From Macrostomum lignano (Eukaryota): 64,000 nucleotides of DNA. The notes beneath the pieces are model-generated. The model was not told the DNA's origin. It saw only the letters and a program-made list of their open reading frames with translations, and searched no databases. Positions 1-44,217 of the stretch are shown piece by piece; the stretch's first letter is position 1, and every line of letters begins with the position of its first letter. The translations under genes were made by a program, and so were the position numbers. The stretch covers positions 1 through 64,000 of the forward strand of contig NIVC01002037.1 of NCBI GenBank assembly GCA_002269645.1, in the 5' to 3' direction.

Positions 1-560
1 AATAGTACTTCCGGTGTTGCTTTAAGTGATAACAAATAGTACTTCCGTGTTGCTTTAAGTGAAAACCAAATAGTACTTCCGGTGTTGCTTTAAGTGATAA
101 CCAAATAGTACTTCCGTTTGCTTTAAGTGATAACCAAATAGTACTTCCGGTGTTGCTTCAAGTGACAACCAAATAGTACTTCCGGTGTTGCTTTAAGTGA
201 TAACCAAATAGTACTTCCGGTGTTGCTTTAAGTGATAACCAAATAGTACTTCCGGTGTTGCTTTAAGTGATAACCAAATAGTACTTCCGGTGTTGCTTCA
301 AGTGATAACCAAATAGTACTTCCGGTGTTGCTTCAAGTGACAACCAAATAGTACTTCCGGTGTTGCTTTAAGTGATAACTAAAATAGTACTTCCGGTGTT
401 GCTTTAAGTGATAACCAAATGAACTCCGGTGTTGCTTCAAGTGACAACCAATAGTACTTCCGGTGTTGCTTTAAGTGATAACTAAATAGTACTTCCGGTG
501 TTGCTTTAAGTGACAACAATGGTACTTCCGGTGTTGCTATCAAGTGACAACCAAATACTG
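1..560. repeat. 35-bp tandem minisatellite (aaatagtacttccggtgttgctttaagtgataacc)n, truncated by window start
   Basis: Unit read directly; about 15 copies with small indels. Confidence 0.95.
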
Positions 561-589
561 TATTTGTTTTCTGAAGCAACATTTAACGT

Positions 590-1360
590 AATTTCCGGTG
601 TTGATTTTGGGATATTTTATGACACTCCGGTGTTGCTTTTAGGGATATTATGACACTCCCGGTGTTGCTTTTAGGGATATTTTATGACACTCCCGGTGTT
701 GCTTTTAGGGATATTTTATGACACTCCGGTGTTGCTTTTAGGGATATTTTATGACACTCCCGGTGTTGCTTTTGGGGATATTTTTATGACACCCGGTGTT
801 GCTTTTAGGGATATTTTATGACACTCCCGGTGTTGCTTTTGGGGATATTTTATGACACTCCCGTGTCACTTTAGGGATATTTTATGACACTCCCGGTGTT
901 GCTTTTGGGATATTTTATGACACTCCGGTGTCACCTTTAGGGATATTTTATGACACTCCCGTGTTGCTTTTGGGATATTTTATGACACTCCCGGTGTTGC
1001 TTTTAGGATATTTTATGACACTCCCGGTGTTGCTTTAGGGATATTTTATGACACTTCCGGTGTTGCTTTTAGGGATATTTTATGACACTCCGGTGTTGCT
1101 TTTGGGATATTTTATGACACTCCCGGTGTTGCTTTTAGGGATATTTTATGACACTCCCGGTGTTGCTTTTGGGGATATTTTATGACACTCCCGGTGTCAC
1201 CTTTAGGGATATTTTATGACACTCCCGGTGTTGCTTTTGGGGATATTTTATGACACTCCCGGTGTCACCTTTAGGGATATTTTATGACACTCCCGGTGTT
1301 GCTTTTGGGGATATTTTATGACACTCCCGGTGTTGCTTTTAGGGATATTTTATGACACTT
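590..1360. repeat. 34-35-bp tandem minisatellite (gggatattttatgacactcccggtgttgctttta)n
   Basis: Unit read directly; shares the core ccggtgttgcttt with the preceding array. Confidence 0.95.
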
Positions 1361-2332
1361 CTGATGTGGCTTCCAGCCGCAAAATTGTCTTACACGCACA
1401 ATAAAATACTTGAAGAGTTGATTCGGGAGGTGATCAGTCTCCAGAAAACTCCCACTTCCAGACACTTGAGCCTGGGAACAGAATAAGGTGTTCACTTACT
1501 GTGGCGGGCTCCTCTTCTGTGTTGGGCAGGTTCTCCGAGCTCGTTTCTTTAAATCTTCTTCTCCGGAGGAATCTTCTTGAAGTCTAGAATCGGCCGAAAG
1601 TGAGAGCGTAACAATCAAGTCTGGCGACGTCGCAGTATTTCTCGAATGCAAACCAATATAGGCCTTAGGTTCAATAATCAATATCAACAATGCGCCCTAA
1701 TAACAAGATCAACTTCTGTGATAATAACGAGGTCCTCCAAGAAAGGCGTCTTCTTCTAGAAATAACGGAATCGGAGTGGTGTGCTCCTATCGGTTAATCT
1801 AGGATAACCAAAATCAATCAACTCGATAATCCTCTAAGGGTATCGGAATCGGTCCGCAGATCCCATCCAATCCCTTAGGAAAATGGGAGGCCTCAAATTC
1901 AATGAACTCAGTTGAATAAACTGATCAATAACGGCCGGCAATAAAATCGCTCTCAGTAATCCAAATAACAAAGGCTCGAACAAAGGCTTACCGAACGGTA
2001 TTTATTTCCTCAGAGATGTAGCCTCGCTTAGCTGTTCCAGCAAGCTTCAACATCTTTGGAGGCAGGTCCGAGTCTGAGATTTTGACTCGGATTTTGGCTT
2101 GTATTTATAGTAAACTTTTGGGGTAAACAGGTTATTTTGGGAAGGTGACTCATTTGCGTTTTGGAATTTTGACCTCTCGAAAATTGCATAGAATAAACTA
2201 TATAGGTTTTGCGCGTCAATTCTATTTTTAGAAATGTTGCATAAGATGATCACTCGTTGTTTCGTGGTCTTCTAAAAATGGAGTATGATCACTTGATATT
2301 TTTAGATTCTAAAATTAAGTTTTCGCATTTTT

Positions 2333-2809
2333 ATGTTACTACTTATAGTAGTTCACTTTGTACCGTATTTGGAGATCTCTACATACTTAGCTCGTAGTTC
2401 CACCCGCCGCTGCCCCAACTCAGTCGAGAGCCACTTCTCCGGTGCCGCCCTGCTGTCAACTGGCCGAGTTCGCTACTCATCTGACGACCTGTTCCTACTC
2501 ATCGACCTCCGGCTCCGCCGTCAGCAGCAACAGTCGGCTGGCCTCGGCCAGGCGGGCGGTCTGAACCGGCGCGCCGTGGATCTGGCCAGCAGCATTCGAG
2601 TGTTTCACACGCTGGTGCAGGACTGCCGCAGGGACAGCTCCGAGATTGCTAGGCATTTCAGCTTTTCTACTTCAAGTAGTATGAGTAGCGACGTAGTTGG
2701 CGAGATTTTGCGACCAGACGAGGGCCACCTGCTTCGAGCTCTGCTGCGACAGATGTGCGACTTCGATCGGCCCAGCGGGATGTGGACTCTGAAGCCGGAG
2801 TTTCGCTAG
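2333..2809 (+). CDS. Possible terminal exon or ORF of an uncharacterised protein; C-terminus LRALLRQMCDFDRPSGMWTLKPEFR loosely resembles winged-helix ends such as TFIIF-beta
   Basis: 158-aa ORF, GC-rich island from ~2400 within AT-richer flanks; resemblance is from memory and weak. Confidence 0.35.
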   Translation: MLLLIVVHFVPYLEISTYLARSSTRRCPNSVESHFSGAALLSTGRVRYSSDDLFLLIDLRLRRQQQQSAGLGQAGGLNRRAVDLASSIRVFHTLVQDCRRDSSEIARHFSFSTSSSMSSDVVGEILRPDEGHLLRALLRQMCDFDRPSGMWTLKPEFR

Positions 2810-3189
2810 GAATATAACTTACTACTCACAGTAGCAGGGACATCTTTTTCAAGAGCTTTGTCTAACTAATACTGGTATTCCGCGTAAAGTTTTTATTCTA
2901 TAATGTATTACCTGTAATGTATTTGTTTTTTGAAAAATATTCTTCCTGCAATAATGTTTAGTTAATTTGATCTGTAGAAGTACGAGTATAGCTCGTACTG
3001 AAGTTTAAATATATTACCTTTTTGACCAAATTGACCTGTTAAGCTGTCGGTTGAATATTTTAATAATTTTGTGCCAAAACTATAAGTTATGAAGTTATAA
3101 AGTTACTTAGCTACTTTTTTAAACTTACCAATCTAAATTCAGGGTGCCAAATAAGGTGTTAATGAGATCTTATTCTCTTGCAAAGGTGC

Positions 3190-3630
3190 TAAATCAGGTG
3201 TCTAAGGGATCTAGTTGGCTCACCAAATCAGGTGTCTAAGGGATCTAGTTGGCTCACCAAATCAGGTGTCTAAGTGATCTAATTGGCTCACCAAATCAGG
3301 TGTCTATGGGATCTAATTGGCTCACCAAATCAGGTGTCTAAGTGATCTAATTGGCTCACCAAATCAGGTGTCTAAGTGATCTAATTGGCTCACCAAATCA
3401 GGTGTCTAAGTGATCTAATTGGCTCACCAAATCAGGTGTCTATGGGATCTAATTGGCTCACCAAATCAGGTGTCTAAGGGATCTAATTGGCTCACCAAAT
3501 CAGGTGTCTAAGGGATCTAGTTGGCTCACCAAATCAGGTGTCTAAGTGATCTAATTGGCTCACCAAATCAGGTGTCTATGGGATCTAATTGGCTGACACA
3601 TATCAAATGTCTATGGGGATCTAATTAGCT
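3190..3630. repeat. 34-bp tandem minisatellite (caccaaatcaggtgtctaagggatctagttggct)n
   Basis: Period read directly (cacc at 3221, 3255, ...). Confidence 0.95.
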
Positions 3631-3994
3631 TGCTCAAAATTACGAGTACTTACTTATAATAAAGGCTGTGGTGTCCTTGAAGGCTATGTATCTGTGACTA
3701 CATAACTAAGACATAGCTCGTTCCAATCCTTAGGTAGACCACCCTCTGGTACCTATTGTTTCTATCGTTAGCACGGTTAATTAGATGTTAGTGATGGAAG
3801 TACCTTGATGCTATGATCAAGCTTTTTACGGAACAGGAAGCTAGTGTCAACTCTCAAAGTTTTTTCCTGGACTGTTTGAATCAATAAAATATCAATTCTA
3901 GTGACAATTTATTCAGTTTTAATGTGGTGGTGTTGTTAACTTAATGTTTTTCGCACTGAGAAGCCTTGCCATCGATCTGTCAGCAGATTGAAAT

Positions 3995-4370
3995 ACCGTG
4001 TCGTCTACCAATTGATTTGCTCTGAGAACCAGTGCACCACCTATGCTGGAGAAAACTTAACGACAGTTGTATATGAGGGCTAAGGAGCATTAGGTTCAGA
4101 ACTCTTCAGGACAAGATTATGAATTGACCGTACGTGACATGAGTGGTTGCACTTTCCTGTACGCCCCTTGGCTTGCCCACTGGACTGGCTCATCAAAACT
4201 ACTACAAGTACCAAAGCATAATTTACCTCATTCCAGTGTTTCCTGTCTTATCAACCCAAGTATCTGATATATGTATATATATATACAATTAATGTTGTTT
4301 GTTCACTCTTTCGTTTCAAGTTAAAATCTACCCTGACGAAGTGCTACTTAGGACGAAAAGCTCCCGGTAG
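3995..4370 (+). mobile_element. Degenerate Penelope-like element remnant (GIY-YIG endonuclease fragment plus hammerhead-like motif)
   Basis: 4000-4090 reads VVYQLICSENQCTTYAGE, then after a frameshift RQLYMRAKEH, matching the PLE pattern VVYxIxC..C..Y.GET.R.L..R..EH. Confidence 0.65.
4328..4370 (+). ncRNA. Minimal type I hammerhead ribozyme-like motif, probably degenerate
   Basis: ctacc-CTGACGA-a-gtgct(actt)aggac-GAAA-agctc-cc-ggtag; ctacc pairs with ggtag; stem II has one mismatch; extra bases at the cleavage site. Confidence 0.55.
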
Positions 4371-4793
4371 CTACATGTATATACACTGCATGTACGAGCG
4401 TATGTTGCTTATAACTTTTCTTGCTTCTCTTATCATGCCAGCTTGGAATTCAGTTTATATCAGTTTGTTCAGTTTGAAATAAACGTGGATCCAGAATCCT
4501 GGCTTCTGTAATGAAGTTTTGATATATAAGGATCCAGGCCCTTCCTAGGGTTAGAATTTTGCATATAAGTGAGTTTCCTAATATGGAATAAGGAAATGCA
4601 GCTTGCCAATAGGGTTTCTCTCTTAGTTAGGTTTGCCGTTGGGCAGCGTTTACTGTCTACGAGCTAGTTAAATTGTATGGGTGCTGTGATAGAATACCTA
4701 TTTTTAAGAGCCTAGGCTTTTGTATAAATATAATAAAGCTGGACTCGGCTGCGGAGGTCAGAAATAACGCCTTTAAAGTTTATCTGACTGACA

Positions 4794-6059
4794 ATGCCTC
4801 GCTATCTTGTGTCTCTAGCCCTGCCTCTGCTGCTTCTCAGCAGCTGCTGTTTGCACGGTGAATCTTCTTTGCCGAGCTATGTCGATTTTCTTCACGACTA
4901 CAGCCGCACGTACGACTGTCGATGTCATACGGTTTCTTCGGAATACGACTTCTTGTGCGAGATCGTTAAAAAAGGATTAACGGCAGCAAATAGCAGCATC
5001 AGCTGCTCCAACCTGCCTACAAAAGTGATTGCTCACCTAAACATCAGCTGCTCCGGTTGCAGCAACTGCGTCTCAGTGAACATGCACGAGATGACTCGAG
5101 CTCATTATGACGATGACCAGCAGATAAACTTTTATCCGCCGTCGGAGATTTCACTGAACGATTGTCGGGTCAACAGTCTCAATATTAGAATGATGCAGTT
5201 GAGAGCTGAGAATGTCAGCGTCACTGAAGGCATGGAGATAGCACAGTTCGGTGTGCCACAACATCCGGGTGTTGGTGGCTACTACACCGTGAATGTCACC
5301 TACCCGACTGATTTCAACGCGTCCGATTGTTGGCTGACTTACCTGCACATCAGACGGAGCAGTATGTGGTACTTGCCCGCCTATGTTCTACACAAATGCC
5401 AGTACATTCGTAGTGTAAGCATCGTTGAGTCGCCGATCACGTGGGTATCGATGACTGACCTACTGGCCCTTCGGTCAATCGATAGCTTGACCCTGCGCAA
5501 CTGCAGCGTGAGAACGTTTGCCGATGACGCTTTGTCGAAAGCGCTGACGGCTCTAGATGAATATCTGCAACGAGTTGGTCCGCAGCCAGTCACTGAGAAT
5601 CCTCAAGTAGCAGAGGCTATTAAACGACTGCGTAAGATGAGGCAGGACTCCGGCAAACTGAACTTGGTAATCAATCTGTACGACATGATGGACTCATTCA
5701 ACATCAGCTTTTCGCTGCTATTCGGCTACCGAACCATCAGCCTGGGCAGTGGCTTTTCTCCCTCCGACATTCCGTTCGACGTAGCTCTCAGTTACTTGAA
5801 CTTGCAATACAATGAGCTGACCGAGATCCCTTTTTCTATCAGCATGTTTGGCAATTTAAATGCAATTGACCTTAGTCACAACAAAATACGCAGGCTGTAT
5901 CACAGCTGGCTGTGCTGGTACCCTCCTATACGCGAGGAAGACAAGGCAAACTCTACCAGACACTGCTATTGGTTCAGAGGATCCAGGCAGACTCTGAAAG
6001 TGCTGAACCTTTCTTACAATCGAATCAAACAAATTGGCGAAATTCAACCTTGGCACGGG
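4794..6059 (+). CDS. Toll-like receptor-like gene A, exon 1 (signal peptide, Cys-rich N-terminal region, first LRRs)
   Basis: MPRYLVSLALPLLLLSSCC signal peptide; LRRs LSYLNLQYNELTEIP, LNAIDLSHNKIRRL; donor GGG|gtaagg at 6060, at the same position as in paralog B. Confidence 0.85.
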
Positions 6060-6112
6060 GTAAGGTGCATTGAAAAAATATTATTCATATTTTCATTCGC
6101 AGGATGGCTGTA

Positions 6113-6365
6113 GGCACGTCTTCGGCGACATTGTCCCACAACCAACGCTGAGGCCATTCTGTTCATTCCACTGACTCCACAAGCGCTCCAATACTGTACG
6201 CAGGCACTCACTCATGCACTCGCTCACACAGGGTGTGAAGTGCACAAACCCCCCCCCCCCAACCATTTTTCGTGCACACAAGCCCCAAATGTATGAGGCC
6301 GCGCGCGGAATCGAACCAGGGGTCGTTGCGCGAGAGTCAGACGGGCTTACCGCTAGTTCTCTTGA
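6113..6365 (-). mobile_element. tRNA-derived SINE-like element in intron 1 of TLR-like A
   Basis: Perfect B-box GGTTCGATTCC on minus strand (6307-6317); body similar to copies at ~10430-10600 and ~50442-50570 (gcgacattgtc.cacaacc; cactca...acagg.gtgcacagc). Confidence 0.6.
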
Positions 6366-6546
6366 TAGCCTCGTATTGGGGTTTTATAATAAAACCTGTT
6401 GACAACCCACAATGTCTTTAAACGGACATTGTTCTAAATTCTACTAGCTGTTTCTATCTTCTCGGATACCTTTAAATGACGCCGCGACAATTGTTCTAGT
6501 AAAAAAAGATACCCAGCAAGTTTAAAACCCAACTCGTCACATCTAG

Positions 6547-8851
6547 GTGGCACTGGCCGAGCTGTACCTGCAGAATAATTTTATTGTGAGCATCAATTCG
6601 GACGCATTCAGCTATTCGCTGCTGTCAAAGAGCCTGCTGGCGCTTAACCTCGACGACAACCAACTGCCCTACATTCATTTAAAGTGCTTGAGCCGCCTGG
6701 AGACTCTGAGCATTCGAAATGGTGGCCTGGCAAATATCGAGCTCAGTTCCATTCCCCAGTCGGAAAGGCTTAGGTGGATCAATCTGACCAACAATTCAAT
6801 CAGCTCGATTTCCTACAACGCTTTCAACAATCGTCCAGCCTTGGAGACAATAGATCTAAGGAACAATAGCTTAGAAAATATGTATGCATACAGCTTCAAC
6901 ATGTCGGAGCGTCCAACCTTAAGCTCTCGTGTTGTCTTGTTAATAAGCGGGCAAAAGGTTAAAACGGTCTGCAACTGCTATCACGTCTACGCTTACATAA
7001 CAGAGGAAGAGACCGACTTGGAAAGGACTAACTACCACTATCCAGCGATCCCTAAGCACGAATTGGAAATTACGTCATGCCTATTCTTCTTGAAGGACGG
7101 TGCTAACTCAACTAGAAAACTAAGTGGTGCATCGTACCGCGAGTTCTTATGTGCCTTCAGTGGCGACTATGAACAGAAATTACCGAAAAAATACTGCGAA
7201 CAACCCCCACAATCTCAGTATGCGTCGTACGCAAATGAACCAATCCCCATAACAGGCCTGACTAACAGCACGTTTGAGTGTTGGGAGACTTGCGTACCCG
7301 ACTGCAGCTGCTACCACACGGCCAAGTGGGAGTTGTCCGACCTCAACTGTACCAATATTGATGTAAACATGGTCAGCATACTGCTGCGCATCCCTGTAAA
7401 GTACATGTACTTTTCCGGAATCAGGGAGTCCGACTATTTCCACAGAATAACAAATTCCACACTGAAATGGGAAACACCAAAACTCCGCGATGCCTTAGTA
7501 GTTTTGTTTTTCAACAATAGCAACATTCGCTACATCGAAGAGAATGCGTTCGTAGATAAAACTTCGATAAAGTTTCTATACTTGGACGACAACAGGCTTG
7601 AAAAAGTACCGGCAAAAGCTTTCTGCTCACCGAATTCAGATCTGATTCGGCTAAGTCTATTGAGAAACAACCTAACTTGGATTGACCCCTATTTGTTAAA
7701 TTCTAGCTGTCTTCCAAATTTAAACGAACTCAAGATCAGCAGCAATCCGTGGCACTGTCAGTGTAACGAAATGTGGACAAGTCTTCACAAATCTCTAATT
7801 AGTGTGGCGCGCACAACGCAAGTTGTCCCAGATTTCGAAAGTATGCGTTGCCAAGTGGATCCGGCAATTATTGAAGCCTGCGAATTGAACAGATGGAATG
7901 ATGCCTGGCGACTTGATTGCCAAAAAATTCTTTTAAGCAATGGATCTCGCGACTATCCAGTGAGCGATGAGGGCGGACTCGTCAGGGTGTGCGAGCTTAT
8001 AGCGGACTCGGCAGCACAGCAGTGAAGGCAGATCGTCCTGATCATTCTGTCCTCATTATTCGGTCTCGCGCTGCTCGGTTTCGCGGTGCTCGCTGTCCGC
8101 CGTCGACACCGACTGCTGGCCGTGGTTCGAGTCCTCATCCTCCTCAAGTACCAGAGCAGTCGGCGACTGCAGCAGCAGACATCTCGGGACTCGCTGCCGT
8201 ACGACGCGATGCTGTGGGCGTCGGACAGAGACCAGGACTGTCTGGTCGACGTGCTGAACTGCGTGCGCAGCGCCTCGGGCGGAGACGAGCTCGAGCTGTG
8301 CGTTCCGGAGAGCTTCCTCTACTCGGACCTGTGCTCCTGTCCGCTCACCTACTTTGACTGTCCGGCTGAGGGAGCCAAGTTCAGCGGCAAGGTGGTGGTG
8401 GCTTTGTCCGAGAGGTTTCTCGACACCCAGTACCTGGCTCTGTGTCAGGTGATTCGAGATCTCGACAGCTTAGGTCGGAATCCGTTCAAGGACATCGTGT
8501 TTCTGCGCCTGAGCTCGCGCAGAGTGTCGCTTCAGCGCCAGAGACAGCTCGGACCTGAGGACGTGGAGGCGTTCCACACTCTGCAGAGAATCCTCGCAGG
8601 GAGCGACATCGAATACAAGTCCGTTGACTGGGAATACAGACTCATCGAGCGCATTCGGAACCGAGATCCGGCCGCCGTTCTCGTGTTTGACTCGTCTGTT
8701 CCGCCAGAGACTTCAGCGGCGGCCACGCCCGCGGTAGCTGACCGCCTTGATATTACCGTCGGGACCGCATCGGAGCCTGAAGAGCTATTAGACCTTCCAG
8801 GCGAGGGGCAGCCATTAATTGTGGACGTTGAGCAGACAATAGATTTTATAA
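6547..8851 (+). CDS. TLR-like gene A, exon 2 (LRRs, internal LRRCT/LRRNT Cys cluster, LRRs, NPWHCQC LRRCT, in-frame TGA at 8023-8025, TM helix, TIR-like domain 1)
   Basis: Acceptor ctag|GTG at 6547; ORFs 6547-8025 and 8086-8904 are in the same frame; TM IVLIILSSLFGLALLGFAVLAV follows the stop; donor A|gtaagt at 8852 (phase 1). Confidence 0.8.
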
Positions 8852-8959
8852 GTAAGTACACAAATTATTGCGGCACTGTTCTGAAATCGGCTTCAAAACG
8901 ATGAGCTCGGAATTTCCACCATTACCCATATAATCTATAATCACATAACCAATATAAAG

Positions 8960-9372
8960 GAAGCCGCACCATCCTGAGCACGATTCGGGATTGGCCGCCG
9001 TTCCACTCGGACAAAGTGCCGGAGGTCTTCATCCTGTCCGCTCCTGAGTCCGCCTCTGACTCCGAGTCCCGAGCCGACCCAGATTCGAGCTCGAACACCG
9101 TCGTCGAGCTCATCGTTCGTCGCCTCCAAGGCGTTCGGCTCGGCACCAACGACGCGGCCCTGGCTGCTCGCTGGCCTGACAACTTCGAGGGCGCCTCGCC
9201 AGCCGGCCGCATCAACAGCTTCCTGATGAAGCGAACTCGCCAGTTCGTGCTGCTGCTCAGCAACGGCCTGCTCAGCTGGCTCAGAGACGAGGCCGAGCTG
9301 CAGTGCGAGTTCCAAGCCTTCCTCGCTGCGAACTCGTTCAGACGCCGCCTGCTGGTAGTTCAGGTTGGACAG
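8960..9372 (+). CDS. TLR-like gene A, exon 3 (TIR-like domain 2)
   Basis: Phase-1 acceptor aaag|GA at 8960; EVFILS...FVLLLSNGLLSWLRDE...RRRLLVVQ is TIR-like; donor CAG|gtgaga at 9373. Confidence 0.65.
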
Positions 9373-9409
9373 GTGAGACTGAGTGAGCAGGTGTGAGTTT
9401 TGACTAGCT

Positions 9410-9855
9410 TTGCCTCACTGCTGTGTGAGTGAGACAGCTGTACCTCACTGCTGTGTGAGTGAGACAGCTCTTCCTCACTGCTGTGTGAGTGAGACAGCTG
9501 TACCTCACTGCTGTGTGAGTGAGACAGCTCTCCCTCACTGCTGTGTGAGTGAGACAGCTCTCCCTCACTGCTGTGTGAGTGAGACAGCTCTCCCTCACTG
9601 CTGTGTGAGTGAGACAGCTCTCCCTCACTGCTGTGTGAGTGAGACAGCTCTCCCTCACTGCTGTGTGAGTGAGACAGCTCTCCCTCACTGCTGTGTGAGT
9701 GAGACAGCTCTCTCTCACTGCTGTGTGAGTGAGACAGCTCTCCCTCACTGCTGTGTGAGTGAGACAGCTCTCTCTCACTGCTGTGTGAGTAAGACAGCTC
9801 TCTCTCACTGCTGTGTGAGTGAGACAGCTGTACCTCACTGCTGTGTGAGTGAGAC
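9410..9855. repeat. 30-bp minisatellite (ctgtgtgagtgagacagctctccctcactg)n in last intron of TLR-like A
   Basis: About 15 near-perfect units. Confidence 0.95.
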
Positions 9856-9884
9856 ATACAGTATCGATCTTTATTCACTCGCAG

Positions 9885-10043
9885 TTGGACAGCCGGTCGA
9901 GAGCTCGCTACCGGGCGCTGGCGAATCAGCGACTGGACGGCGGGGAGTCCGGGCCGGCGACGAACTGGTTCGACATGAGCGCCGATGACTGCGACGTCGA
10001 GGCACTGGGGCTGTGGCTGGACGGAGTGCTGTACAAAAAGTGA
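9885..10043 (+). CDS. TLR-like gene A, exon 4 (end of TIR2, LDSRSRARYRAL...WLDGVLYKK*)
   Basis: Acceptor ttcactcgcag|TTG, phase 0; the four exons total 4143 nt, a multiple of 3. Confidence 0.65.
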   Translation: MDSRSRARYRALANQRLDGGESGPATNWFDMSADDCDVEALGLWLDGVLYKK

Positions 10044-10429
10044 CTCCTGAGCATGAAACTTTGATGAAGCGCACGAAAAGATTGATAAGCAGTAAGAATG
10101 TTATCCCAGTTCGACTTGTAGAATTTAAATATTGAAAAATTAAAAGTGCAATAAATTGCAACCGAATATCACTTTTTCATCGTAAATATTGACCTTAAAA
10201 ATATACAACATGTGAATACGACTAGTTGCTTCACGTTGACTAAGAGCCATTGGCCGAAAAAGAAGAAAATGCTGGGACTTCCTGCTAAACACAGGCAAAG
10301 AGTTGCAAGGCCGCTATCACCCTGGAAGGAAACCGTTAGCCACCAGATTACTCCTTGGTCAAGCGTCCATCAGCACTGACCTACTGTACACTGGGACCTT
10401 ATTGTGTTAGTTATAGGCAGGGGCTGTGT

Positions 10430-10745
10430 GTACCCTGACGCACTTTAAGCGACATTGTCACACAACCGGCGAGAGTCATTACTGCCCATTTCGCCGATTC
10501 CCCTGAGCAGGCATACAAGCTCGCGGATGCGCACGCAGTCATACGCACAGGCACACACTCACACAGGAGTGCACAGCAGCCCTAACTTCATTTATTGTTA
10601 GGCATGTACACTTCACTATGCCTTGTGAGTTGGCCCTCAATGACGTTAATTACACGAGCAGAGCCAAGCCGAAATTCCAATTTAGCTCCAAAAATGTGAC
10701 TGCACTTGTGAATCGAGACTGGGCTGCTGGCACTGCCAGGACCTC
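10430..10745 (-). mobile_element. Diverged copy of the same SINE-like family
   Basis: Shares gcgacattgtcacacaacc and cacaggagtgcacagcagccct with the other copies. Confidence 0.45.
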
Positions 10746-11089
10746 AGCGCCAATGAAGCTGCTCAGCAAGTCCTCCCGCCATCACGCCAATCACGGAACA
10801 AAAAGATACCCTTTGAAGTGCGCCTTGCATAGTGAAAACAGGCGACAATGTCTCTTAAGCTATCATCCTGAAAGTGCACAAAGTGCATGACATTTGCAAG
10901 GGGTCTTGGATGCAACAGTCCCGGCCGTTAAATGTGTTAAATTGGGTTTCCAATTAGAAGGAGCAATGAACTGACCTACCAACTAGTGTCTCTTTGTTGT
11001 CAATATCGAAGTAATAGCCTATTAAAAGGACAATGATGCAACTGGGGATCGCACGTCCTTCTTTACTAACTCATTCAAGCAATCCCCAG

Positions 11090-11640
11090 ACTAACCTTCA
11101 AGCAATCCCCAGACTAACCTTCAACCAATCCACAGACTAACCTTCAAGCGATCCCCAGACTAACCTTCAAGCGATCCCCAGACTAACCTTCAAGCGAGCC
11201 CCAGACTAACCTTCAACCAATCCACAGACTAACCTTCAAGCGAGCCCCAGACTAACCTTCAACCAATCCCCAGACTAACCTTCAAGCGATCCCCAGACTA
11301 ACCTACAAGCGAGCCCCAGACTAACCTTCAACCAATCCACATACTAGCCTTCAAGCGATCCCCAGAATAACCTTCAAGCAATCCCAGACTAACCTTCAAG
11401 TGATCCCCAGACTAGCCTTCAAGTGATCCCTACACTAACTAACCTTCAAGCGATCCACATACTAGCCTTCAAGCGATCCCCAGAATAACCTTCAAGCAAT
11501 CCCAGACTAACCTTCAAGTGATCCCCAGACTAGCCTTCAAGTGATCCCTACACTAACTAACCTTCAAGTGATCCCCAGACTAGCCTTCAAGTGATCCCTA
11601 CACTAACCTTCAAGCGATCCACAGACTAACCTTCAAGCGA
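11090..11640. repeat. 23-bp minisatellite (cttcaagcgatccccagactaac)n
   Basis: Unit read directly. Confidence 0.95.
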
Positions 11641-14219
11641 ATCGGAGTTGATTAAACGCTCATAAGAGCAAAGCGTGACTATGTCAGGGGCAGATGAAAG
11701 CTGGTACATGTAGCTCGTAGATGCAGCTATATCAAGTATCACAAAGTCAAAGGTTAGTGTTGGCGCCAGCGTTCTTGATAGCTATAGCTTTTAAACTTCG
11801 TTTTACAACCTAAATCTGACAAATCTGACAATAAATGAATCGGTGGTATACGACATATGAAATTTTAAATTTACCGTCCTGCTGTCTTACAGTCTTTAAA
11901 CCAACTGTTTTTACGATTGCACGATGCAAACTTTGTTTTAGATTGTTTTCGCTATCAACCCGTTTGTATTGCTAAAGTCTATGCATTTGCCAGCAAGGAT
12001 AGAGCCTGTGTCAGTTCGGAATTTCAACCTTTGCCAACCGGTTTGTTGTCAGCCTTCTCTCATGACACAAAAAACTGCAGAAATTTTTCTCTCTTCGACT
12101 GGATACTATCCGAAAAATAGTTGCATACTAGATGACAAAAAGAGTTTAGAAGAAAGCATCTATGCTTCCTAACCCTCGTTTTGCAGTATGTTAATAAAAA
12201 AGTGTTCTGAAAACGCCACTAGCTGTACGATATTATGAAGCAGAATGTATGCGCACGAGCTGTACAGACACAAGAAACGGCTGAAAGTTCCTTTTTTGTT
12301 TTTTATTTAAATCTACCCTGTCTGCAGGGTACTGGCAGACTGGCCAGTACCCTAGGAAGGAAACTGGCAGGGGGTATACTCGTATTATACTGCAATTGTC
12401 TCTTAGACTGCACCGTCTATATATAATTTTCAACCATTATAGAACTAGCATAATAAGAATATGTAATTACATGTACTTGTATTCGGTTTGGCTCTTCTCC
12501 AACTGCTGCATGAACTCGATATGCATGTAAAATCTGAGATGGAGTTTAAATCTGACCTGCTAAATTCAAGCCTGATATTGTAATGGACATTATGTATCCT
12601 GTGCGACAACATTATCACAATATAAGTTAATTTAGTGCTTCAATTATGCTAGCACGACTCAGCGGGTATGATGTTGCCCCAGGCGTCAGGTCACTTGCGC
12701 GGGTGATAAGCATGCAGCCCATAATCAAACGAAGCTTGCTTTCTGGTTTACAAGGACAGGTAGTGCTGCTGGAAGAAGACTTCAGCCTCATCAGGCATTG
12801 TGGTGAAGGGCGTTGTCCGCGCAGAATAGGGAGTCTAGCTACTGCTTCAGATACTCTAACGGCCTCGTTGCTCTCTGGATGTGTGCAAATGTATTTAGTA
12901 CATGTTGAAGGCCCAAGTTCTCTCTGTGAAGTGTCTGTATTGTTCTCTGTTGATGAACATTGCAGCTTGAGATCCAGGCTCTATGTACGAGTTGGGCATA
13001 GCCAACAAGAAGATTCAAGTCCATTTAGACTTAACTTGTACATGTACGTCATTCTCGCGTGACATCACGGCATGGTTGTACATATTTTTCATCAAGTTGT
13101 ACCTCGTTAGGATTTCGTTTTGGGTTATAGGGTTAGGATATTAGAGTTAGGGTTCATAGGATAGAGTTTAGGCTAAGCACACGTAAGCTATAGTAGGGGT
13201 TTGGTTTGACAGTCAACTCGCGGCTGTCAGATGTCGCAGACTCAGTGGAGTGGTTCGATGGCTTAATTCTGTAGATGCTATTACGGTCGTACTCTTGATT
13301 CCAAAAGTAAGTAGACCACGATTTATCGTTCAATATCTGTAATGTTTATTAGCTAAATACAGCTTTTCATAGTCTTCTATTGGCTATCGAATGTAGATCT
13401 GCATCTGCGCCAGAAATATTTAATGACGCTAGCTACAAACTGTTCGATTGTTGACCTGCCCGAGACCTACTGAGCTGTTTTTGCCATCGCTCAGGCTGCA
13501 GCTATTTTTTGCGTAGAACGCTTGTTTTTTCAGGAAATTGTCTACGGAGCAGTAGGAGCAGTAATTGTGCGTTCATATTCGAGCAGGGTTTTTTTAAGAC
13601 GAGCCTGTCCTCCGCAGGCACGCAATGACTGTACAGTTCCGTGCATGCACAAGAGAGATTAATAGCTAGTGTCTGTCGTGATGTGCTCAGGTGTGCTCAG
13701 GTTTATTATATAGGCTCTCCAACGCATTGCTACGCATACTTAATGATAAATATATGCAGGAAAGCGAAAAATAAATTCTGCAATAAGTGTCTGCTATACG
13801 AGTAAGTAACTTTTTCCAGGTAAGTATGAGTATTTTGTCTGAAACTTTTGGATAGATAAGCGAACAGAAAAATATTTAATCTTGAAACATGCCTCGTTTA
13901 GTGTTTTCCTTAGCATGATGCAGCTATGCAAATTTTCAAGTCAAGAATCTTCCCGCTTGGTTATTACTTATTATCCATATGCTGACGGCTTTTGATGGTT
14001 AGTGAAACGGTTTTTGCAAGCTCAAAATTTGAAATCGTCGAAAAAGTGTTGCTAAGCTAGCTCCAGGATTCGAGACTTCGATGTTGTTTCTTCGATTTGA
14101 TGTTTCGATATTGTCAAAAATTTTGTCTGGAATGATGAGAAATTCATGTCTACCCGACAATTGACTGCCACAGATTGACTGCCAACCCTAATTTAAAAGC
14201 AAGCCAAAATTGGCACTGG

Positions 14220-14535
14220 CAGCCAAATGTCACTGACAGTCAAGTGTAACTGACAGTCAAATGTCACTGACAGTCAAATGTCACTGGCAGTCAAATGTCA
14301 CTGACAGTCAAATGTCACTGACAGTCAAATGTCACTGACAGTCAAATGTCACTGGCAGTCAAATGTCACTGACAGTCAAATGTCACTGACAGTCAAATGT
14401 CACTGACAGTCAAATGTCACTGACAGTCAAATGTCACTGACAGTCAAATGTCACTGACAGTCAAATGTCACTGACAGTCAAATGTCACTGACAGTCAAAT
14501 GTCACTGGCAGTCAAATGTCACTGACAGTCAAATG
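14220..14535. repeat. 17-bp minisatellite (gtcactgacagtcaaat)n
   Basis: Unit read directly, about 18 copies. Confidence 0.95.
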
Positions 14536-16319: not shown

Positions 16320-17630
16320 ATGCAAGCACCGACAGAAAGTCTCATACTGCTACTGGCGTGCACTCTGACGGCGCTCCTGCCGGCTGCTGCAGCTGCTCAG
16401 CCTCAGTTGGATGACGATCTGAACAAATACATTATACTGCCGAAAAACTTCAGTCTAACGCACGAGTGCTGCTGCGAGAACATGATGAACTCGCCCAGGT
16501 TTGACTACTTCTGCCAGGTGTCTGAAAAACCCTACCCGAATGCCAGCTGCATGACTGGTTGGGTAGACTGCTCCGATCTGCCGGGCAGAATCGTGTACAG
16601 CTTGACGATAAACTGTACATCTTACCCATCTGTGACTGTCAATCTGCGAGCTCTCACCGTGGCTCACAACTCAAGCAGCATCGAGAACGAAATCAGCTAT
16701 CCGCCACAACTGGTACATCTAGTGAACTGCAACGTAAACGGTTTCGAAGTTGGAATCCTTGAGCTGCCAGCTGAAAATGTCTCCCTCGATTACGGCATGG
16801 AAGTTGCACCGTTTGGAAGTCCGGATAGGCCGGGCGTTGGCGGTTACTACACTGTTAACGTCACTTATCCGCGTGAATTCCGCCAGGCTGACTGTTGGAT
16901 GGTGGAATTGAACATTGAAAATGCAAGCACTCTTTGGTATCTGCCGTCCTACCTGTGTCACAAGTGCAACTCTCTCAAGAACATCTTCATATCTAATTCT
17001 CCAATCGAATGGATCTCGATTCGCGATGTTCTCTCTTTGCATAACGTACGAAGTTTTTCTCTGACCCACAGCCGCCTAAAGTACTTTGCAAGCGACGCTC
17101 TGAGCACAGCTATCAAGCTATTAGATAGATACCTGGAAGCTGGAGTGCAAACCGGCTGCATCAATGACACTGAAGCCGCGATCAAAGCTCTAAACTCAAT
17201 ACGCAGCCGCACAGGACGGTTGAGTAGCCCCACCCAGCTATACGACACGATGGGCACCGCCAATATCGACTTCACCCTGCTATTTGGCTACAGATTGAGA
17301 AGCGCTTTCTCGGGCAATAAAACCGAGCCCGCCTGCGACATGCCTGGCAAGATGGCCCTGACCGATCTCGATTTGTCTTTCAACGCTTTGACGGATATAC
17401 CTTTCTCAATTAGCATGTTCGATCAGCTGAACCGGGTCAATCTTAGCCACAACAGAATCCGCAGCTTGTACCACGGCTGGATGTGCTGGTATCCGCCAGT
17501 TCCCGAAAACCAGAAGAACACTTCAAACCGGCACTGCTATTGGTTCAGAGCGGCTCGAGCTAGTCTGAAGGTCCTGGACTTGTCATTTAACGAAATCAAT
17601 ATGATCGGAGAGATACAGCCTTGGCACCAG
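16320..17630 (+). CDS. Toll-like receptor-like gene B, exon 1
   Basis: ATG 16320, MQAPTESLILLLACTLTALLPAAAAA signal peptide; colinear with A exon 1; donor CAG|gtgagc at 17631. Confidence 0.85.
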
Positions 17631-18508
17631 GTGAGCTAATTATTAATACTAAATTGTTGGTTATCATTATACAAAGCAATTGAAAGGGAGTCATTGAAGT
17701 TTGTGTTGGTTGTGGCCGTTTCAAGACCCCGGATTCGTAAAGTGTTGGAACACGATGACACTGATATCGCTCACTCTGCGATCCTATCGATATGAGTAAT
17801 AGTCGAACCGGTCGATAAATTGAACCTTCGCAGTAATCAGACACCGTTTTATGGCTCAATTATCTTTTCATTTAGCTCTTAGCTGACTACGTAAAAAATT
17901 GTTACAGAATGATCAAACAGATTTTTAGAAACCCATGAGTCGGGCTGTGTCATTTTAATGGTTTTGAGCAAATACTCATTTAAGTAAAAAAGATATAAGC
18001 AAAATAGTTTTTGTCTCGAAAAAAGGAAAAACGTGCTTCTCCCTACTTTTTTCGGTTAATTCTGCCGTCTAATATTTTCAAAGAAACGCAATTTCTTCCC
18101 CACACTTGGCTGGGCCGTGTCTGTCTACGGTTAAATGCTTTTTCATTTCCTTGGCCAGGCCAAAGAAATGATTGGCTAGGCCAAAGAAATGAGCTCTCAG
18201 CTGGAGAATTCGGCCCAGAGAAGGGAAGAAGCGGAAAGTAAAGCTCTAAACCAAACTGACTGCAATCGATAGCTTTTCGGGCCGGTGGACTAGAAACGCC
18301 GAGACATCTTATCCAGGTCTTTTCATGGGGCTTCCAGTTGATAAAATGAGGATTTCAGGTTAACATAAGTCTCTAGAATGAAGCTTTGCTGTGGGCTCCA
18401 ATCATATGCATGTTTAACTTGAAAAAAATCAATGAGTTAAGTGTCTCAAAGAATTTTAATATGATTTTTCAGAAATATTGTTCTCTAAAATTCACCTCTC
18501 CGCTTCAG

Positions 18509-20756
18509 GTGGCGTTGTCGTATCTCATTCTCCGCGGCAACAGAATAATGAGCGTCAACCCGGATGCGTTCGCTTACTCGCCATTAGCCACGAGCTTGCT
18601 GAATTTATATCTGGATGAAAATCTTTTGTCGTATTTTCACCTGGAATGCCTGACCCGACTGGAAGTCCTGAGTCTCGAGGGCTGTCGAATCGCGAATATC
18701 GAGCAGGAATCGCTGCCCAAGTCGAAATCGCTCAGGGAAATCAATCTCGATAGCAACAGAATTTTCGCCATCGCTCCGGGCGTTTTTGAACAGCTTGAAA
18801 AGCTTGAGTTTGTTCGGCTACATCATAACAGGCTGATGCACTTTTATGCGAACAGTTTCAAAACGCCCCCAAGATCGACCTTGGCGTCCAGAGTCATCAT
18901 ACACATTGCCAACCAGAGCGATATACCCATATGCGACTGCAGCCACGTATATAAGAAGATACTGCAGGATGAGGAGTTTGGAAATCCCCAAAAAAGCTAC
19001 GTTTATCCGAGGATTTTGCCAGAAGATATGTCCACCGAGTGCCAGTTCTTCTCCAGATTCAGCTCAACCAGAGTGGTAAAGAAACTAAGCGAATCAAATC
19101 AAAGTGAGTTTCTATGTGAATTCCAGGACAATCAAAAGCACAAGCTGCCCTGGAATTACTGTAACGAAAACGTCACTATTATGGGTCGAGAAAAGTGCTT
19201 TGTGAAGTGCATCTACGGCTGCCGGTGTTACCACGATGACGGATGGGATATTTCTGACCTGGACTGCACCCCGGGCAATTCCACAGTCACCACCGACCTG
19301 GTTAAGATGCGATTCGAATTCCCAATCAAGTACATGTTCATGGCCGGACTTAAGGACTCGGAGTTCTTCCGGCACGTCTCCAAGGGATCATTTAAATGGT
19401 TGAACGAAAGCGATTCAAATGAATTACTGTTCTTGCAGCTGAATAATAGCAACGTCAAATATGTTGAGAAAGATGCGTTCGCAAATTTTGAGAACATAGT
19501 TGTTATTTACCTGCACGACAACAATATTACCAGCATTAATCCGAGCCCTTTTATTGGAAACTGCTTTTTAAATAAAAATCTAAACCAGATCACGCTGCAT
19601 AACAACAGAATGAACTACATCGACCCGGCAATAATTAATGGAACGTGTCCTGTGGGCCTTTCAGGTGTGAGCTTAAGCGGCAATCCGTGGCACTGCTCCT
19701 GCCATGGAAAATGGATCGAGCTCCACAAAACACTCATCCAGGACTCTAGAAAAACACAAACAGTATCGGACTTCCGAAATATGTATTGCACAATTGACGC
19801 GTCTATAGTTGGTGCATGCACGGAGAACCGTGAAAATCTGCAATGGAGTGACGTATGCCAAAATGCAAATGATACGGCTAATTACCCAGTTGCCGACGAA
19901 GGCAGACTTGTCAAAGTTTGCGAGCTCATAGCGGACTCGGCAGTGCAGCAGCGAAGGCAGATCGTCCGGATGATTCTAACCTCAGTATTCGGTCTCGCGC
20001 TGCTCGGTGTCGCGATGCTCGCCGTCCGCCGTCGACACCGACTGCTGGCCGTGGTTCGAGTCCTCATCCTCCTCAAGTACCAGAGCAGTCGGCGACTGCA
20101 GCAGCAGGCATCTCGGGACTCGCTGCCGTACGACGCGATGCTGTGGGCGTCGGACAGAGACCAGGACTGTCTGGTCGACGTGCTGAACTGCGTGCGCAGC
20201 GCCTCGGGCGGAGACGAGCTCGAGCTGTGCGTTCCGGAGAGCTTCCTCTACTCGGACCTGTGCTCCTGTCCACTCACCTACTTTGACTGTCCGGCTGAGG
20301 GAGCCAAGTTCAGCGGCAAGGTGGTGGTGGCTTTGTCCGAGAGGTTTCTCGACACCCAGTACCTGGCTCTGTGTCAGGTGATTCGAGAGCTCGACAGCTT
20401 AGGTCGGAATCCGTTCAAGGACATCGTGTTTCTGCGCCTGAGCTCGCGCAGAGTGTCGCTTCAGCGCCAGAGACAGCTCGGACCTGAGGACGTGGAGGCG
20501 TTCCACACTCTGCAGAGAATCCTCGCAGAGAGCGACATCGAATACAAGTCCGTGGACTGGGAGTACAGACTCATCGAGCGCATTCGGAACCGAGATCCGG
20601 CCGCTGTTCTCCTGTTGGACCGAACAGCGGAACTGGAGTTACCGACGGCAGCTGCTGGCGGTTCGGAAAGACCAGCCGCTACAGCAACTGCGGAGCTTCC
20701 TGATCTTCCTGACGATGAGCAGGCGCTGATTGTCGACGTTGAGCAGCCAGTTACGA
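18509..20756 (+). CDS. TLR-like gene B, exon 2 (LRRs, Cys cluster, LRRCT NPWHCSC, TM, TIR-like domain 1), uninterrupted
   Basis: Acceptor cttcag|GTG; open frame through TM IVRMILTSVFGLALLGVAMLAV and YDAMLWASDRD...KVVVALSERFL; donor A|gtaagt at 20757. Confidence 0.85.
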
Positions 20757-20979
20757 GTAAGTATAACTGCCAGAGCTTTTTGTAGTCTCACTTGCCCCTT
20801 TAGTTGTTAATTTCGTTCCGAAAATTAAACTCTGATACGCAACTCTAGAGTACTACACGTAGCTCGTACATTGAGTTGAATTAGACATTTTCTTATCTCG
20901 AGAAACTCATGATGCATCTAAAGAAACAATTTTTATTTGTAAAGCTCCAAGCTAACGTTTTAATCAACATATTCAAAAG

Positions 20980-21398
20980 TTCGAGCCGCCGCCGCTCCCG
21001 GTGCGGCTGTCAGTGACTGGCCACCGTTCCACTCGGACAAAGTGCCGGAGGTCTTCATCCTGTCTGCTCCTGAGTCCGCCTCTGACTCCGAGTCCCGAGC
21101 CGACCCAGATTCGAGCTCAAACACCGTCGTCGAGCTCATCGTTCGTCGCCTCCAAGGCGTTCGGCTCGGCACCAACGACGCGGCCCTGACTGCTCGCTGG
21201 CCTGACAACTTCGAGGGCGCCTCGCCAGCCGGCCGCATCAACAGCTTCCTGATGAAGCGAACTCGCCAGTTCGTGCTGCTGCTCAGCAACGGCCTGCTCA
21301 GTTGGCTCAGAGACGAGGCCGAGCTGCAGTGCGAGTTCCAAGCCTTCCTCGCTGCGAACTCGTTCAGACGCCGCCTGCTGGTAGTTCAGGTTGGACAG
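20980..21398 (+). CDS. TLR-like gene B, exon 3 (TIR-like domain 2)
   Basis: Phase-1 acceptor caaaag|TT with upstream gctaac branch-like site; donor CAG|gtgaga at 21399. Confidence 0.65.
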
Positions 21399-21429
21399 GT
21401 GAGACTGAGTGAGCAGGTGTGAGTTTTGA

Positions 21430-21610
21430 GTAGCTTTGCCTCACTGCTGTGTGAGTGAGACAGCTCTCCCTCACTGCTGTGTGTGAGTGAGACAGCTCTC
21501 CCTCCCTGCTGTGTGAGTGAGACAGCTCTCTCTCACTGCTTTGTGAGTGAGACAGCTCTCCCTCACTGCTGTGTGAGTGAGACAGCTCTCCCTCACTGCT
21601 GTTTGAGTGA
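21430..21610. repeat. Same 30-bp minisatellite in last intron of TLR-like B (about 6 units)
   Basis: Unit matches 9410-9855. Confidence 0.9.
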
Positions 21611-21634
21611 GTATCGATCTTTATTCACTCGCAG

Positions 21635-21808
21635 GTGGACAGCCGGTCGAGAGCTCGCTACCGGGCGCTGGCGAATCAGCGATTGGACGGCGGGGAGTCC
21701 GGGTCGGCGACGAACTGGTACGACATGAGCGCCGAGGACTGCGACGTCGAGGCGCTGGGGTTGTGGCTGGACGGAGTGCTGTACAAAAAGGCTGATTTAC
21801 GTAAATAA
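21635..21808 (+). CDS. TLR-like gene B, exon 4 (ends ...WLDGVLYKKADLRK*)
   Basis: Acceptor ctcgcag|GTG; the four exons total 4152 nt, giving a 1383-aa product. Confidence 0.65.
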   Translation: MDSRSRARYRALANQRLDGGESGSATNWYDMSAEDCDVEALGLWLDGVLYKKADLRK

Positions 21809-31199: not shown

Positions 31200-31555
31200 A
31201 TGCTGAACATAAAAGAGCCACCATGTCAAACAAAAGTGGCACCATTTCAAACATTAAAGGCCACAATGTCAAACATATATGACTCCATGTCTAACATTAA
31301 AGAGCCACCATGTCGAACATAAAAGAGCCACTATGTCAAACATCAACGAGTCACCATGTCAAGCGTACATACATGACTTCATTTCAGACATTAAAGTGCC
31401 ACCATGTCAAATATTAAAGAGCCACCATGTCAAGCGTATAAGTGACTCCATGTCAGACATTAAAGAGCCATCATTGCATACATTAAAGTGCCACCAGGTC
31501 AAACATTAAAAAGCCACAATGTCAAACACAAAACAGCTACCATGTCAAACATAAA
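31200..31555. repeat. Degenerate ~23-bp repeat (attaaagagccaccatgtcaaac)n
   Basis: Recurring aaagagccaccatgtcaa. Confidence 0.75.
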
Positions 31556-31559
31556 TGGG

Positions 31560-32390
31560 GTGCCTACTATCTTGGAGTGCTTGCTATCTGGAGATGCGTG
31601 CTATCTGGGGGTGCTTGCTATCTGGGGGTGCTTGCTATCTGGGGGTGCTTGCTATCTGGGGGTGCTTGCTATCTGGGGGTGCTTGCTATCTGGGGGTGCT
31701 TGCTATCTGGGGGTGCTTGCTATCTAAGGGTGCTTGCTATTAGGTGGATGCTTGCTATCTGGGGTGCCTGCTATCTTGGAGTGCTTGCTATCTGGAGATG
31801 CGTGCTATCTGGGGGTGCTTGCTATCTGGGGGGGGGATGCTTGCTATCTTGGGGGTTCTAGCTATCTGGGGGTGCTTGCTATTAGGTGGATGCTTGCTAT
31901 CTGGGGTGCCTGCTATCTGAGGGTGCTTGCTATCTGGGGGTGCTTGCTATCTAAGGGTGCTTGCTAACTGGGGGTGCTTGCTTTCTAAGGGTGCTTGCTA
32001 TTAGGTGGATGCTTGCTATCTGGGTTGCCTGCTATCTGGGGGTGCTTGCTATCTGGAGATGCTTGCTATCTGGGGGTGCTTGCTATCTGGGGGTGCTTGC
32101 TATCTGGGGGTGCTTGCTATCTGGGGGTGCTTGCTATCTGGGGGTGCTTGCTTTCTAAGGGTGCTTGCTATTAGGTGGATGCTTGCTATCTTGGGGTGCT
32201 TGCTATTAGGTGGATGCTTTGCTATCTGGGGTGCCTGCTATCTGGGGGTGCTTGCTATCTGGAGATGCTTGCTATCTGGGGGTGCTTGCTATCTGGGGGT
32301 GCTTGCTATCTGGGGGTGCTTGCTATCTGGGGGTGCTTGCTATCTGGGGGTGCTTGCTATCTGGGGGTGCTTGCTATCTGGGGGGTTGCT
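31560..32390. repeat. 17-bp minisatellite (gggggtgcttgctatct)n
   Basis: Unit read directly. Confidence 0.95.
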
Positions 32391-32513
32391 TGCTGTCCTA
32401 GGATGTTTTCTTTTTGCATTGCACTTCATTTGAGCAGTTTTTCTATTGTCTATGTGAAGACTTTTTTGGCCGTCTTTTTGATACTTGTAGAGAGCCAGAG
32501 ATTCTATCTAGAT

Positions 32514-38384: not shown

Positions 38385-38750
38385 ACTACTATGACTATTC
38401 TATGGCCATTTTATGACTAATCTATGACTAGATTATGACGACTACATGACTACTATATGACTACCCAATGACTACTCCGTGATTAACCATTGATTAATCT
38501 AGGATCAGTCAATGACTCATCTATGACATATCTATGACTTGTCTATGACTCATCTATGACTGCTCCATGACTTATCTATGACTGTTCTATGACTCAATCT
38601 ATGACTGCTCCATGACTTATCTATGACTGCTCCATGACTTATCTATGACTGCTCCATGACTTATCTATGACTCAATCTATATGACTGCTCCATGACTTAT
38701 CTATGACTCAATCTATGACTGCTCCATGACTTATCTATGATATCTATGAT
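38385..38750. repeat. Degenerate atgact-based repeat (ctatgactgctccatgacttat-like)
   Basis: Read directly. Confidence 0.8.
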
Positions 38751-40722: not shown

Positions 40723-40729
40723 TAAGAGC

Positions 40730-44212: not shown

Positions 44213-44217
44213 GCTAC

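Follow-up and report, generated by a model that had tools for sequence, protein, structure and literature searches.

An apparently recent premature stop codon ahead of the transmembrane segment in one copy of a Toll-architecture receptor gene of Macrostomum lignano

Gene A, its premature stop codon and the receptor family

The stretch of DNA analysed here (the window) comprises positions 1 to 64,000 of contig NIVC01002037.1 in the assembly Mlig_3_7 (GCA_002269645.1) of the flatworm Macrostomum lignano, and carries on its forward strand two paralogous genes, denoted A and B, that encode leucine-rich repeat (LRR) proteins of apparent Toll architecture. Gene A is interrupted by a premature TGA at codon 915 (8023-8025, + strand), where a C>T change at a CpG has converted CGA to TGA. 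The origin and the possible meaning of this stop are the subject of the present analysis.

The exon structure of gene A, derived from the database models P0001, P0003 and P0076 together with the junction sequences, consists of four exons on the + strand. Exon 1 (4794-6059), which matches GenBank PAA61380.1 and the Pfam families LRR_8 and LRR_4, encodes the signal peptide and the N-terminal LRRs (amino acids 1-422) and ends in the donor GG/GTAAGG. Exon 2 (6547-8851; acceptor TAG/GTG, donor A/GTAAGT in phase 1) encodes the remainder of the ectodomain, the premature stop, the transmembrane segment, a first cytoplasmic module and a linker. Exon 3 (8960-9372; acceptor AAAG/GA, donor CAG/GTGAGA) encodes a second cytoplasmic module, and exon 4 (9885-10043), located by tblastn with the exon-4 peptides of P0001 and P0003, contains the natural stop TGA at 10041-10043. 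The introns are 487, 108 and 512 nt long, and every GT/AG splice site is present. The joined coding sequence is 4,143 nt long, and its sole internal stop is codon 915, with the natural stop following codon 1380; the claim of the first-pass annotation that frame, transmembrane helix and splice sites are intact 3' of the stop is thus borne out.

The premature TGA is in frame with exon 2 and closes the open reading frame (ORF) 6547..8025. Around it, gene A reads GCA GCA CAG CAG TGA AGG CAG ATC and gene B reads GCA GTG CAG CAG CGA AGG CAG ATC, with the counterpart codon CGA at 19952-19954; this difference, the starting point of the first-pass annotation, can be read directly from both sequences. 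Exons 1 and 2 joined up to the TGA encode exactly 914 amino acids, ending in ...ADSAAQQ and identical to PAA61380.1 (BOX15_Mlig012993g2), in agreement with the proposal of a complete signal-peptide plus LRR ectodomain that lacks an anchor. Immediately 3' of the TGA, the frame continues with R-Q, followed by the transmembrane segment IVLIILSSLFGLALLGFAVLAV (8032-8097, + strand), which accordingly starts two codons past the stop, consists of 22 hydrophobic residues as read from the translation, aligns with the transmembrane segment of insect Tollo and is followed by RRRHR. Residues specific to A, for example, IVLIILSSLFGLALLGFAVLAVR and QQQTSR, are encoded 3' of codon 915 as well. The exon junctions downstream of the TGA, 8851/8960 and 9372/9885, are at least 826 nt away. 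The original gene A contains 18 CGA codons, each a single CpG transition away from TGA, so that a stop placed ahead of the transmembrane segment is not improbable: the odds of this site are 1 in 18, and its position was spotted post hoc.

Pfam detects LRRs only (LRR_8, LRR_4 and LRR_5), located in the two ectodomain exons of each gene, and the hydrophobic N-terminus MPRYLVSLALPLLLLSSCC reads as a signal peptide. The top matches outside M. lignano are the insect proteins Tollo, 18-wheeler (18w) and Toll-7. In the BLASTP alignment of B with Tollo (E=6e-21), the LRRs, an internal cysteine cluster, the LRRCT, the transmembrane segment and TIR box 1 follow each other in the same order, with the motifs CDCS, C..C.CYHD..W...DC and NPWHCSC being colinear, and in TIR box 1, YDAMLWASDRDQD of B is aligned against YDGYIIYNERDQD of Tollo. 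Judging from these sequence features, the architecture of A and B is that of a P-type (multiple-cysteine-cluster) Toll.

The cytoplasmic part is far more divergent. Module 1 (8179-8691, + strand) aligns in register with insect Toll TIR domains in hhalign (81% probability, E=1.3e-6), compared with 0.1% for module 2. With a custom hidden Markov model (HMM) built from these insect TIRs, every A/B protein obtains ~12 bits, again in register, and reversed decoys and TIR-less LRR proteins go unscored; UniProt names the A/B proteins 'TIR domain-containing'. In contrast, the Pfam TIR family yields no match in A or B even at E<=10, and searches of the Protein Data Bank (PDB) with sequences and family profiles find no TIR match to the cytoplasmic modules. 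A Foldseek search of the PDB with a model of module 1 likewise returns no significant match and no TIR domain (TM-score <=0.33); the model, one of five, has a mean confidence score (pLDDT) of 72, and the negative is a weak one given the underlying three-sequence alignment; the AlphaFold2 model of the 847-residue intact A product, from a four-sequence alignment, has a pLDDT of 44 and is uninformative for the cytoplasmic part. A phmmer search of 1.84 billion representative sequences with the post-stop translation of exon 2 retrieves M. lignano paralogs only, including BOX15_Mlig015932. Module 1 can therefore be described as weakly TIR-like on the basis of its hhalign and HMM signal, and module 2 appears to be a domain of ~180 amino acids without detectable relatives; the 'both TIRs' of the first-pass annotation could not be verified.

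Copies of the locus, polarity of the substitution and A/B conversion

Mlig_3_7 is a Canu assembly of PacBio reads, with Pilon polishing by Illumina reads from both DNA and RNA-seq; its gene models in GenBank are based on transcripts (StringTie/TACO and a de novo transcriptome), and it has PacBio reads in common with the assembly ML2 (PMC5730564). The sequenced line, DV1, harbors three homeologous subgenomes, S, L1 and L2, with a homeolog divergence of ~1.1% in coding sequences and ~2.2% genome-wide; in Mlig_3_7, homeologs are held as separate, partly redundant contigs, chimeric scaffolds make up 36% of the assembly length, and 93% of the read pairs map to multiple loci (PMC10733133). At the A/B locus, three contigs start or stop, at or near tandem arrays, and are ~99.9% identical to each other outside the repeats: positions 1-12852 of the window overlap the end of NIVC01000178.1 (locus L001), and the start of NIVC01001362.1 (L003) joins the overlap from window-equivalent 10380. 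Because the assembly is both redundant and broken here, contig counts do not simply equal subgenome counts.

L001 is syntenic with the window, with a gene for a CSB/Rad26-like protein located upstream in both, and provides the most informative comparison. Over 3836-8022, a segment of 4,187 bp that takes in exon 1, intron 1 and the portion of exon 2 encoding ectodomain, L001 and the window are identical base for base; they first differ at 8023, where L001 has C for T, and only once more in the 826 nt that follow in exon 2. Over the 12.8-kb overlap, there are ~15 substitutions outside the tandem-repeat arrays, far under the homeolog divergence, which implies that the two contig ends represent the same subgenome locus. 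The pair is one of the following: two alleles, locally homogenised L1/L2 copies or an overlap that was assembled twice. The protein product of L001 is PAA88685.1 (P0076), a member of the A protein cluster that reads ...CELIADSAAQQRRQIVLIILSS..., is of A type with Arg at codon 915, and shows the sequence ...AAQQRRQIVLII... across this codon, with no stop.

A site-by-site table of the copies shows that T at 8023 is found only in the A copies of the window and of contig NIVC01004999.1 (L005), with C in the A copy of L001 and in each of the four copies of B. The A copy of L005 is identical to the window over 5838-8927, TGA included, and is 1-2% diverged past 8927; exon 1 of the adjacent gene B differs from that of the window by 1.2%. 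The A-specific 22-mers that span 8023 are GGCAGCACAGCAGTGAAGGCAG for T and GGCAGCACAGCAGCGAAGGCAG for C. A third paralog (P0083, BOX15_Mlig015932), which is located elsewhere in the genome and is of Toll architecture as well, has Arg in the neighborhood of the codon-915 position. With C shared by the A copy of L001 and every B copy, and with Arg in the third paralog, C is the ancestral state and T the derived one, a very recent CpG transition. The opposite possibility, that the CGA of L001 was restored by conversion from B, is ruled out by the A-diagnostic bases at 8015/8016 and 8039/8043, which lie 7-8 nt before and 16-20 nt after 8023 and are retained in L001. The locus L004 was considered as a copy without exons 1 and 2 of A but was dropped, since a run of N (scaffold gap) lies directly upstream of A exon 3.

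Several of the other copies contain lesions of their own. In L004, exon 1 of gene B has a 1-nt deletion in an A-run (L004 9893; window-equivalent 16689), and exon 4 of the A remnant (L004 3245-3368), next to the scaffold gap, is split over three frames; in L005, the start of exon 2 of gene B has lost 86 nt (L005 ~12191; window-equivalent 18510-18595). These lesions are in line with a continuing decay of redundant copies, but some of them may be long-read errors.

Gene B (16320-21808, + strand; PAA61381.1, 1383 amino acids) consists of exons 16320-17630, 18509-20756, 20980-21398 and 21635-21808. The divergence between A and B is strikingly uneven. Synonymous sites of the ectodomain exons are saturated (pS 0.77-0.80) and the synonymous divergence (dS) of the linker is 2.3, compared with dS values of 0.035 for module 1, 0.11 for exon 3 and 0.085 for exon 4, and the boundaries between the diverged and similar segments are sharp. 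The similar segments, all on the + strand, are 8104-8690 in A against 20033-20619 in B (~98.6% nucleotide identity, covering module 1), 8985-9372 against 21011-21398 (99% identity to exon 3 of B) and, in exon 4, 9885-10040 against 21635-21790; the linker between the two modules and intron 2 are fully diverged between A and B and interrupt the patches. Such a patchy dS profile with sharp boundaries is characteristic of gene conversion, by which the cytoplasmic modules of A and B evolve in concert.

Intron 3 of A contains an array of 30-nt tandem repeats (9406-9856, + strand), with a counterpart in B (21432-21611) and another in an unannotated fragment, C, located 15 kb downstream of the gene pair on the opposite strand (36122-37298, - strand). 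Fragment C, an orphan, duplicates only part of the gene (exon 3, the repeat array of intron 3 and exon 4), is ~88% identical to A, has a 5-codon deletion in exon 4 and no receptor exons upstream, and could be either a piece of a pseudogene or a small gene for module 2 alone; sequence of the same type is present in L003 (~20508-20657).

The rest of the window contains the 3' end of the gene for the CSB/Rad26-like helicase, which is cut by the contig start (2333-2809, + strand), a remnant of a retroelement RNase H downstream of B (23506-24042, - strand), an ORF with a Zic-type zinc finger (50813-51331, - strand), a fragment of a mariner-type transposase (57052-57594, - strand) and an exon of thiamin pyrophosphokinase (60713-61225, + strand). 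Tandem arrays with periods of 17-35 nt are numerous (1-557, 595-1359, 3191-3630, 9406-9856, 11065-11640, 14214-14535, 21432-21611, 31206-32394 and 36300-36760). The GC skew is strongly negative, -0.16 to -0.29, over 38001-44000, and low-complexity ORFs rich in proline/histidine and serine/threonine occupy 42268-44240 on the + strand.

Explanations for the stop

The stop probably marks a very young nonsense variant of one copy of A, be it an allele or a homeolog, in a neopolyploid genome, and a case of ordinary loss of function. A single CpG C>T transition turned Arg codon 915 from CGA into TGA in this copy of A, and under this reading the resulting null or hypomorphic copy would be tolerated thanks to the remaining intact copies of A and to gene B. 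With two exon junctions located at least 826 nt past the stop and ~1.5 kb of former coding sequence 3' of it, the mRNA of the T copy is a predicted substrate of nonsense-mediated decay (NMD), so that the NMD expected by the first-pass annotation is a reasonable prediction; any product escaping NMD would be the 914-residue anchorless ectodomain. That the downstream frame is intact does not speak for function, since the short time since the mutation and the A/B conversion of the cytoplasmic modules are two sufficient reasons for it. The copies are not uniform for the stop, which is thus unfixed, as follows from the identical CGA copy on another contig, and this otherwise identical copy, along with C in all copies of B, favors the recent null allele, which the first-pass annotation had listed among several options.

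Several observations weigh against this interpretation. We infer both NMD and loss of function from sequence. The TGA is present on two contigs, the second of which, NIVC01004999.1, has the 1.2% different B gene; if that contig is not chimeric, T has spread between homeologs or risen in copy number, which a neutral null could achieve by conversion but a favored variant would fit as well. The ectodomain is left complete, from the signal peptide to the LRRCT, so that the truncation falls in the most 'useful' place. The GenBank model of the locus is transcript-based, so that some transcription of an A copy occurs, and the lesions in the other copies could be errors of long-read assembly.

Among the alternatives, the one that survives best, albeit as an unlikely one, is that T at 8023 is an artefact of assembly or polishing, or else a rare somatic or pool variant, with all real copies of A having CGA. 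The near identity of the window and L001 ends outside the tandem repeats is compatible with one locus assembled twice, and Pilon polishing relied on multi-mapping Illumina and RNA-seq reads. The same T, however, is found in two polished contigs, and a repeated consensus C>T error in both is unlikely; errors in long-read consensus are mainly indels, not C>T changes at CpG, and with both variants assembled, short reads map best to their own copy, which preserves a real difference. Additional evidence comes from two older A-type models in UniProt (A0A1I8HAC1 and A0A1I8JIR6), taken to be models from ML2, the earlier assembly. Both excise the same 15 codons, VCELIADSAAQQ followed by the stop and RQ (7987-8031), as an 'intron', and the homologous segment is kept in all three older B-type models; the simplest reading of this pattern is that the gene predictor evaded the same TGA. 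Since the two assemblies have PacBio reads in common, this support is only partly independent. Sequencing error, also among the options raised initially, thus retains little weight against a T that is shared by two polished contigs and implied by two models that splice around it. The same two older models also omit 35 ectodomain codons (AFSGDYEQ...PITG) in a region where the window sequence has no defect, a likely gene-prediction artefact.

Quite unlikely, in our assessment, is the possibility that the truncated A functions as a secreted Toll ectodomain and would act as a soluble decoy or co-receptor for A/B ligands, with a division of labor among the homeologs. The location of the stop two codons ahead of the transmembrane segment, which spares the signal peptide, every LRR and the LRRCT, the presence of T on two contigs, one of them beside a B gene from a diverged homeolog, the transcript-based gene model at the locus and the existence of soluble TLR (Toll-like receptor) ectodomains in vertebrates are all compatible with such a role. 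Nothing, however, points to age or selection: apart from this site, the copies with T and with C are identical over 4.2 kb, the stop is missing from every other copy and paralog examined, and its position is the 1-in-18 outcome noted above. The downstream sequence is too young to have decayed and is homogenised with B regardless, the two downstream exon junctions predict NMD, and, with over a third of the assembly length in chimeric scaffolds, the second T contig may be chimeric or redundant. The secreted decoy receptor suggested by the first-pass annotation is thus left without positive support: the anchorless form, with TGA on two contigs and CGA in a third, otherwise identical A copy, is not fixed, and the intact downstream region has another explanation.

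A related and very unlikely variant holds that the T allele, albeit new, is already favored, with the secreted ectodomain modulating the signaling of the intact copies, such that subfunctionalisation would be caught at its first step and T would spread between subgenomes by gene conversion. The identifiers of the A and B genes are not mentioned in searchable full texts or in the supplements of expression papers, and the contig accessions were not found in the supplement of the subgenome paper.

Finally, bypass of the stop by readthrough, by selenocysteine insertion or by splicing of the 45-nt segment, which would yield a full-length or nearly full-length receptor, appears extremely unlikely, notwithstanding the frame that is open downstream to the natural stop and the in-frame GT..AG pair that flanks the stop and was picked twice by a gene predictor, because the TGA arose only recently from an Arg codon, the context is not leaky, and the 45-nt segment does not resemble the introns of gene A. 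Leaky stops are typically of the TGA-C type in the tetranucleotide hierarchy; the tetranucleotide here is TGA-A, as the first-pass annotation had correctly read from the sequence. No selenocysteine insertion sequence (SECIS) or any other Rfam family reaches the gathering score in the interval from 4 to 24 kb of the window, and the predicted RNA structure in the 100 nt after the stop is no better than that of shuffled sequences (z=-1.0; z=+0.2 for the B control), so that nothing in this region speaks for regulated readthrough. The 45-nt segment (7987-8031, + strand), across which P0003 and P0077 read DEGGLVR/IVLIIL, has a purine-rich 3' end, is well under the size of the real introns of gene A (108-512 nt) and is retained in all transcript-based A/B models, with the model of the window locus stopping at the TGA; this 'intron' is probably a predictor artefact. 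A cryptic donor created by the mutation itself, CA/GTGAAG (GT at 8022-8023), was rejected, being weak (A at -1 and A at +5) and leaving the exon in phase 2, so that joining it to the acceptor of exon 3 or of exon 4 would break the frame.

Comparison with known systems

The likeness of A and B to insect P-type Tolls (Toll, 18-wheeler, Tollo/Toll-8) extends over the signal peptide, two LRR blocks with an LRRCT/LRRNT cluster between them, a C-terminal LRRCT, a single transmembrane segment and a juxtamembrane 'YDA.....D.D' motif that aligns with TIR box 1. Unlike insect Tolls, the A/B proteins have a cytoplasmic domain that escapes Pfam TIR and PDB searches, with an unrecognizable box 2, and a second cytoplasmic module of ~180 amino acids; in the databases searched, the A/B family is confined to M. 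lignano. A published survey scored zero TLRs in M. lignano, and this count was used to argue for an early loss of TLRs in flatworms (PMC8609888). Because the cytoplasmic domain escapes the Pfam TIR models, the A and B genes would be missed by a TIR filter of the Pfam/SMART type, which would account for the zero count. Receptors of Toll architecture are thus found in a flatworm that was scored as TLR-less, and if module 1 is a true, highly diverged TIR domain, the early-loss argument needs to be revisited.

In having a predicted product that comprises the signal peptide and the whole LRR ectodomain but lacks an anchor, the T copy of A resembles soluble TLRs, such as vertebrate sTLR2 and sTLR4 and fish TLR5S. 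The known soluble TLRs are produced from dedicated genes, by regulated splicing or by shedding, and are fixed features of the respective species. The truncation in A, in contrast, is a single, unfixed point mutation with a predicted protein product. The truncated product is already deposited in GenBank as a hypothetical protein, and the stop itself matters little; more consequential for users is that the models of this locus disagree across databases, one ending at the stop and two splicing around it, which calls for caution with A0A1I8HAC1 and A0A1I8JIR6.

The A/B pair also resembles tandem immune receptors under concerted evolution, with homogenised signaling modules (dS 0.035-0.1) and saturated ectodomains. 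The difference from simple concerted evolution is that the patches are broken by the diverged linker and intron 2, and that an orphan copy of exons 3 and 4 resides on the opposite strand. The pair thus presents a clean case of domain-specific conversion, in which the signaling modules are homogenised and the ligand-binding domains diverge.

With respect to the stop, the further lesions in other copies of the same gene pair make the locus similar to genes in early pseudogenisation; the single lesion in the T copy, with no downstream decay, is unlike typical pseudogenisation, although conversion from B could slow the decay of the modules. The closest parallel is the fractionation of duplicates after genome duplication: a single derived stop, near-identical intact copies and three homeologous subgenomes. 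Mutation to a stop codon occurs most commonly through a CpG transition, and the TGA in gene A adds a fresh instance to the well-known class of CpG nonsense mutations in redundant duplicates.

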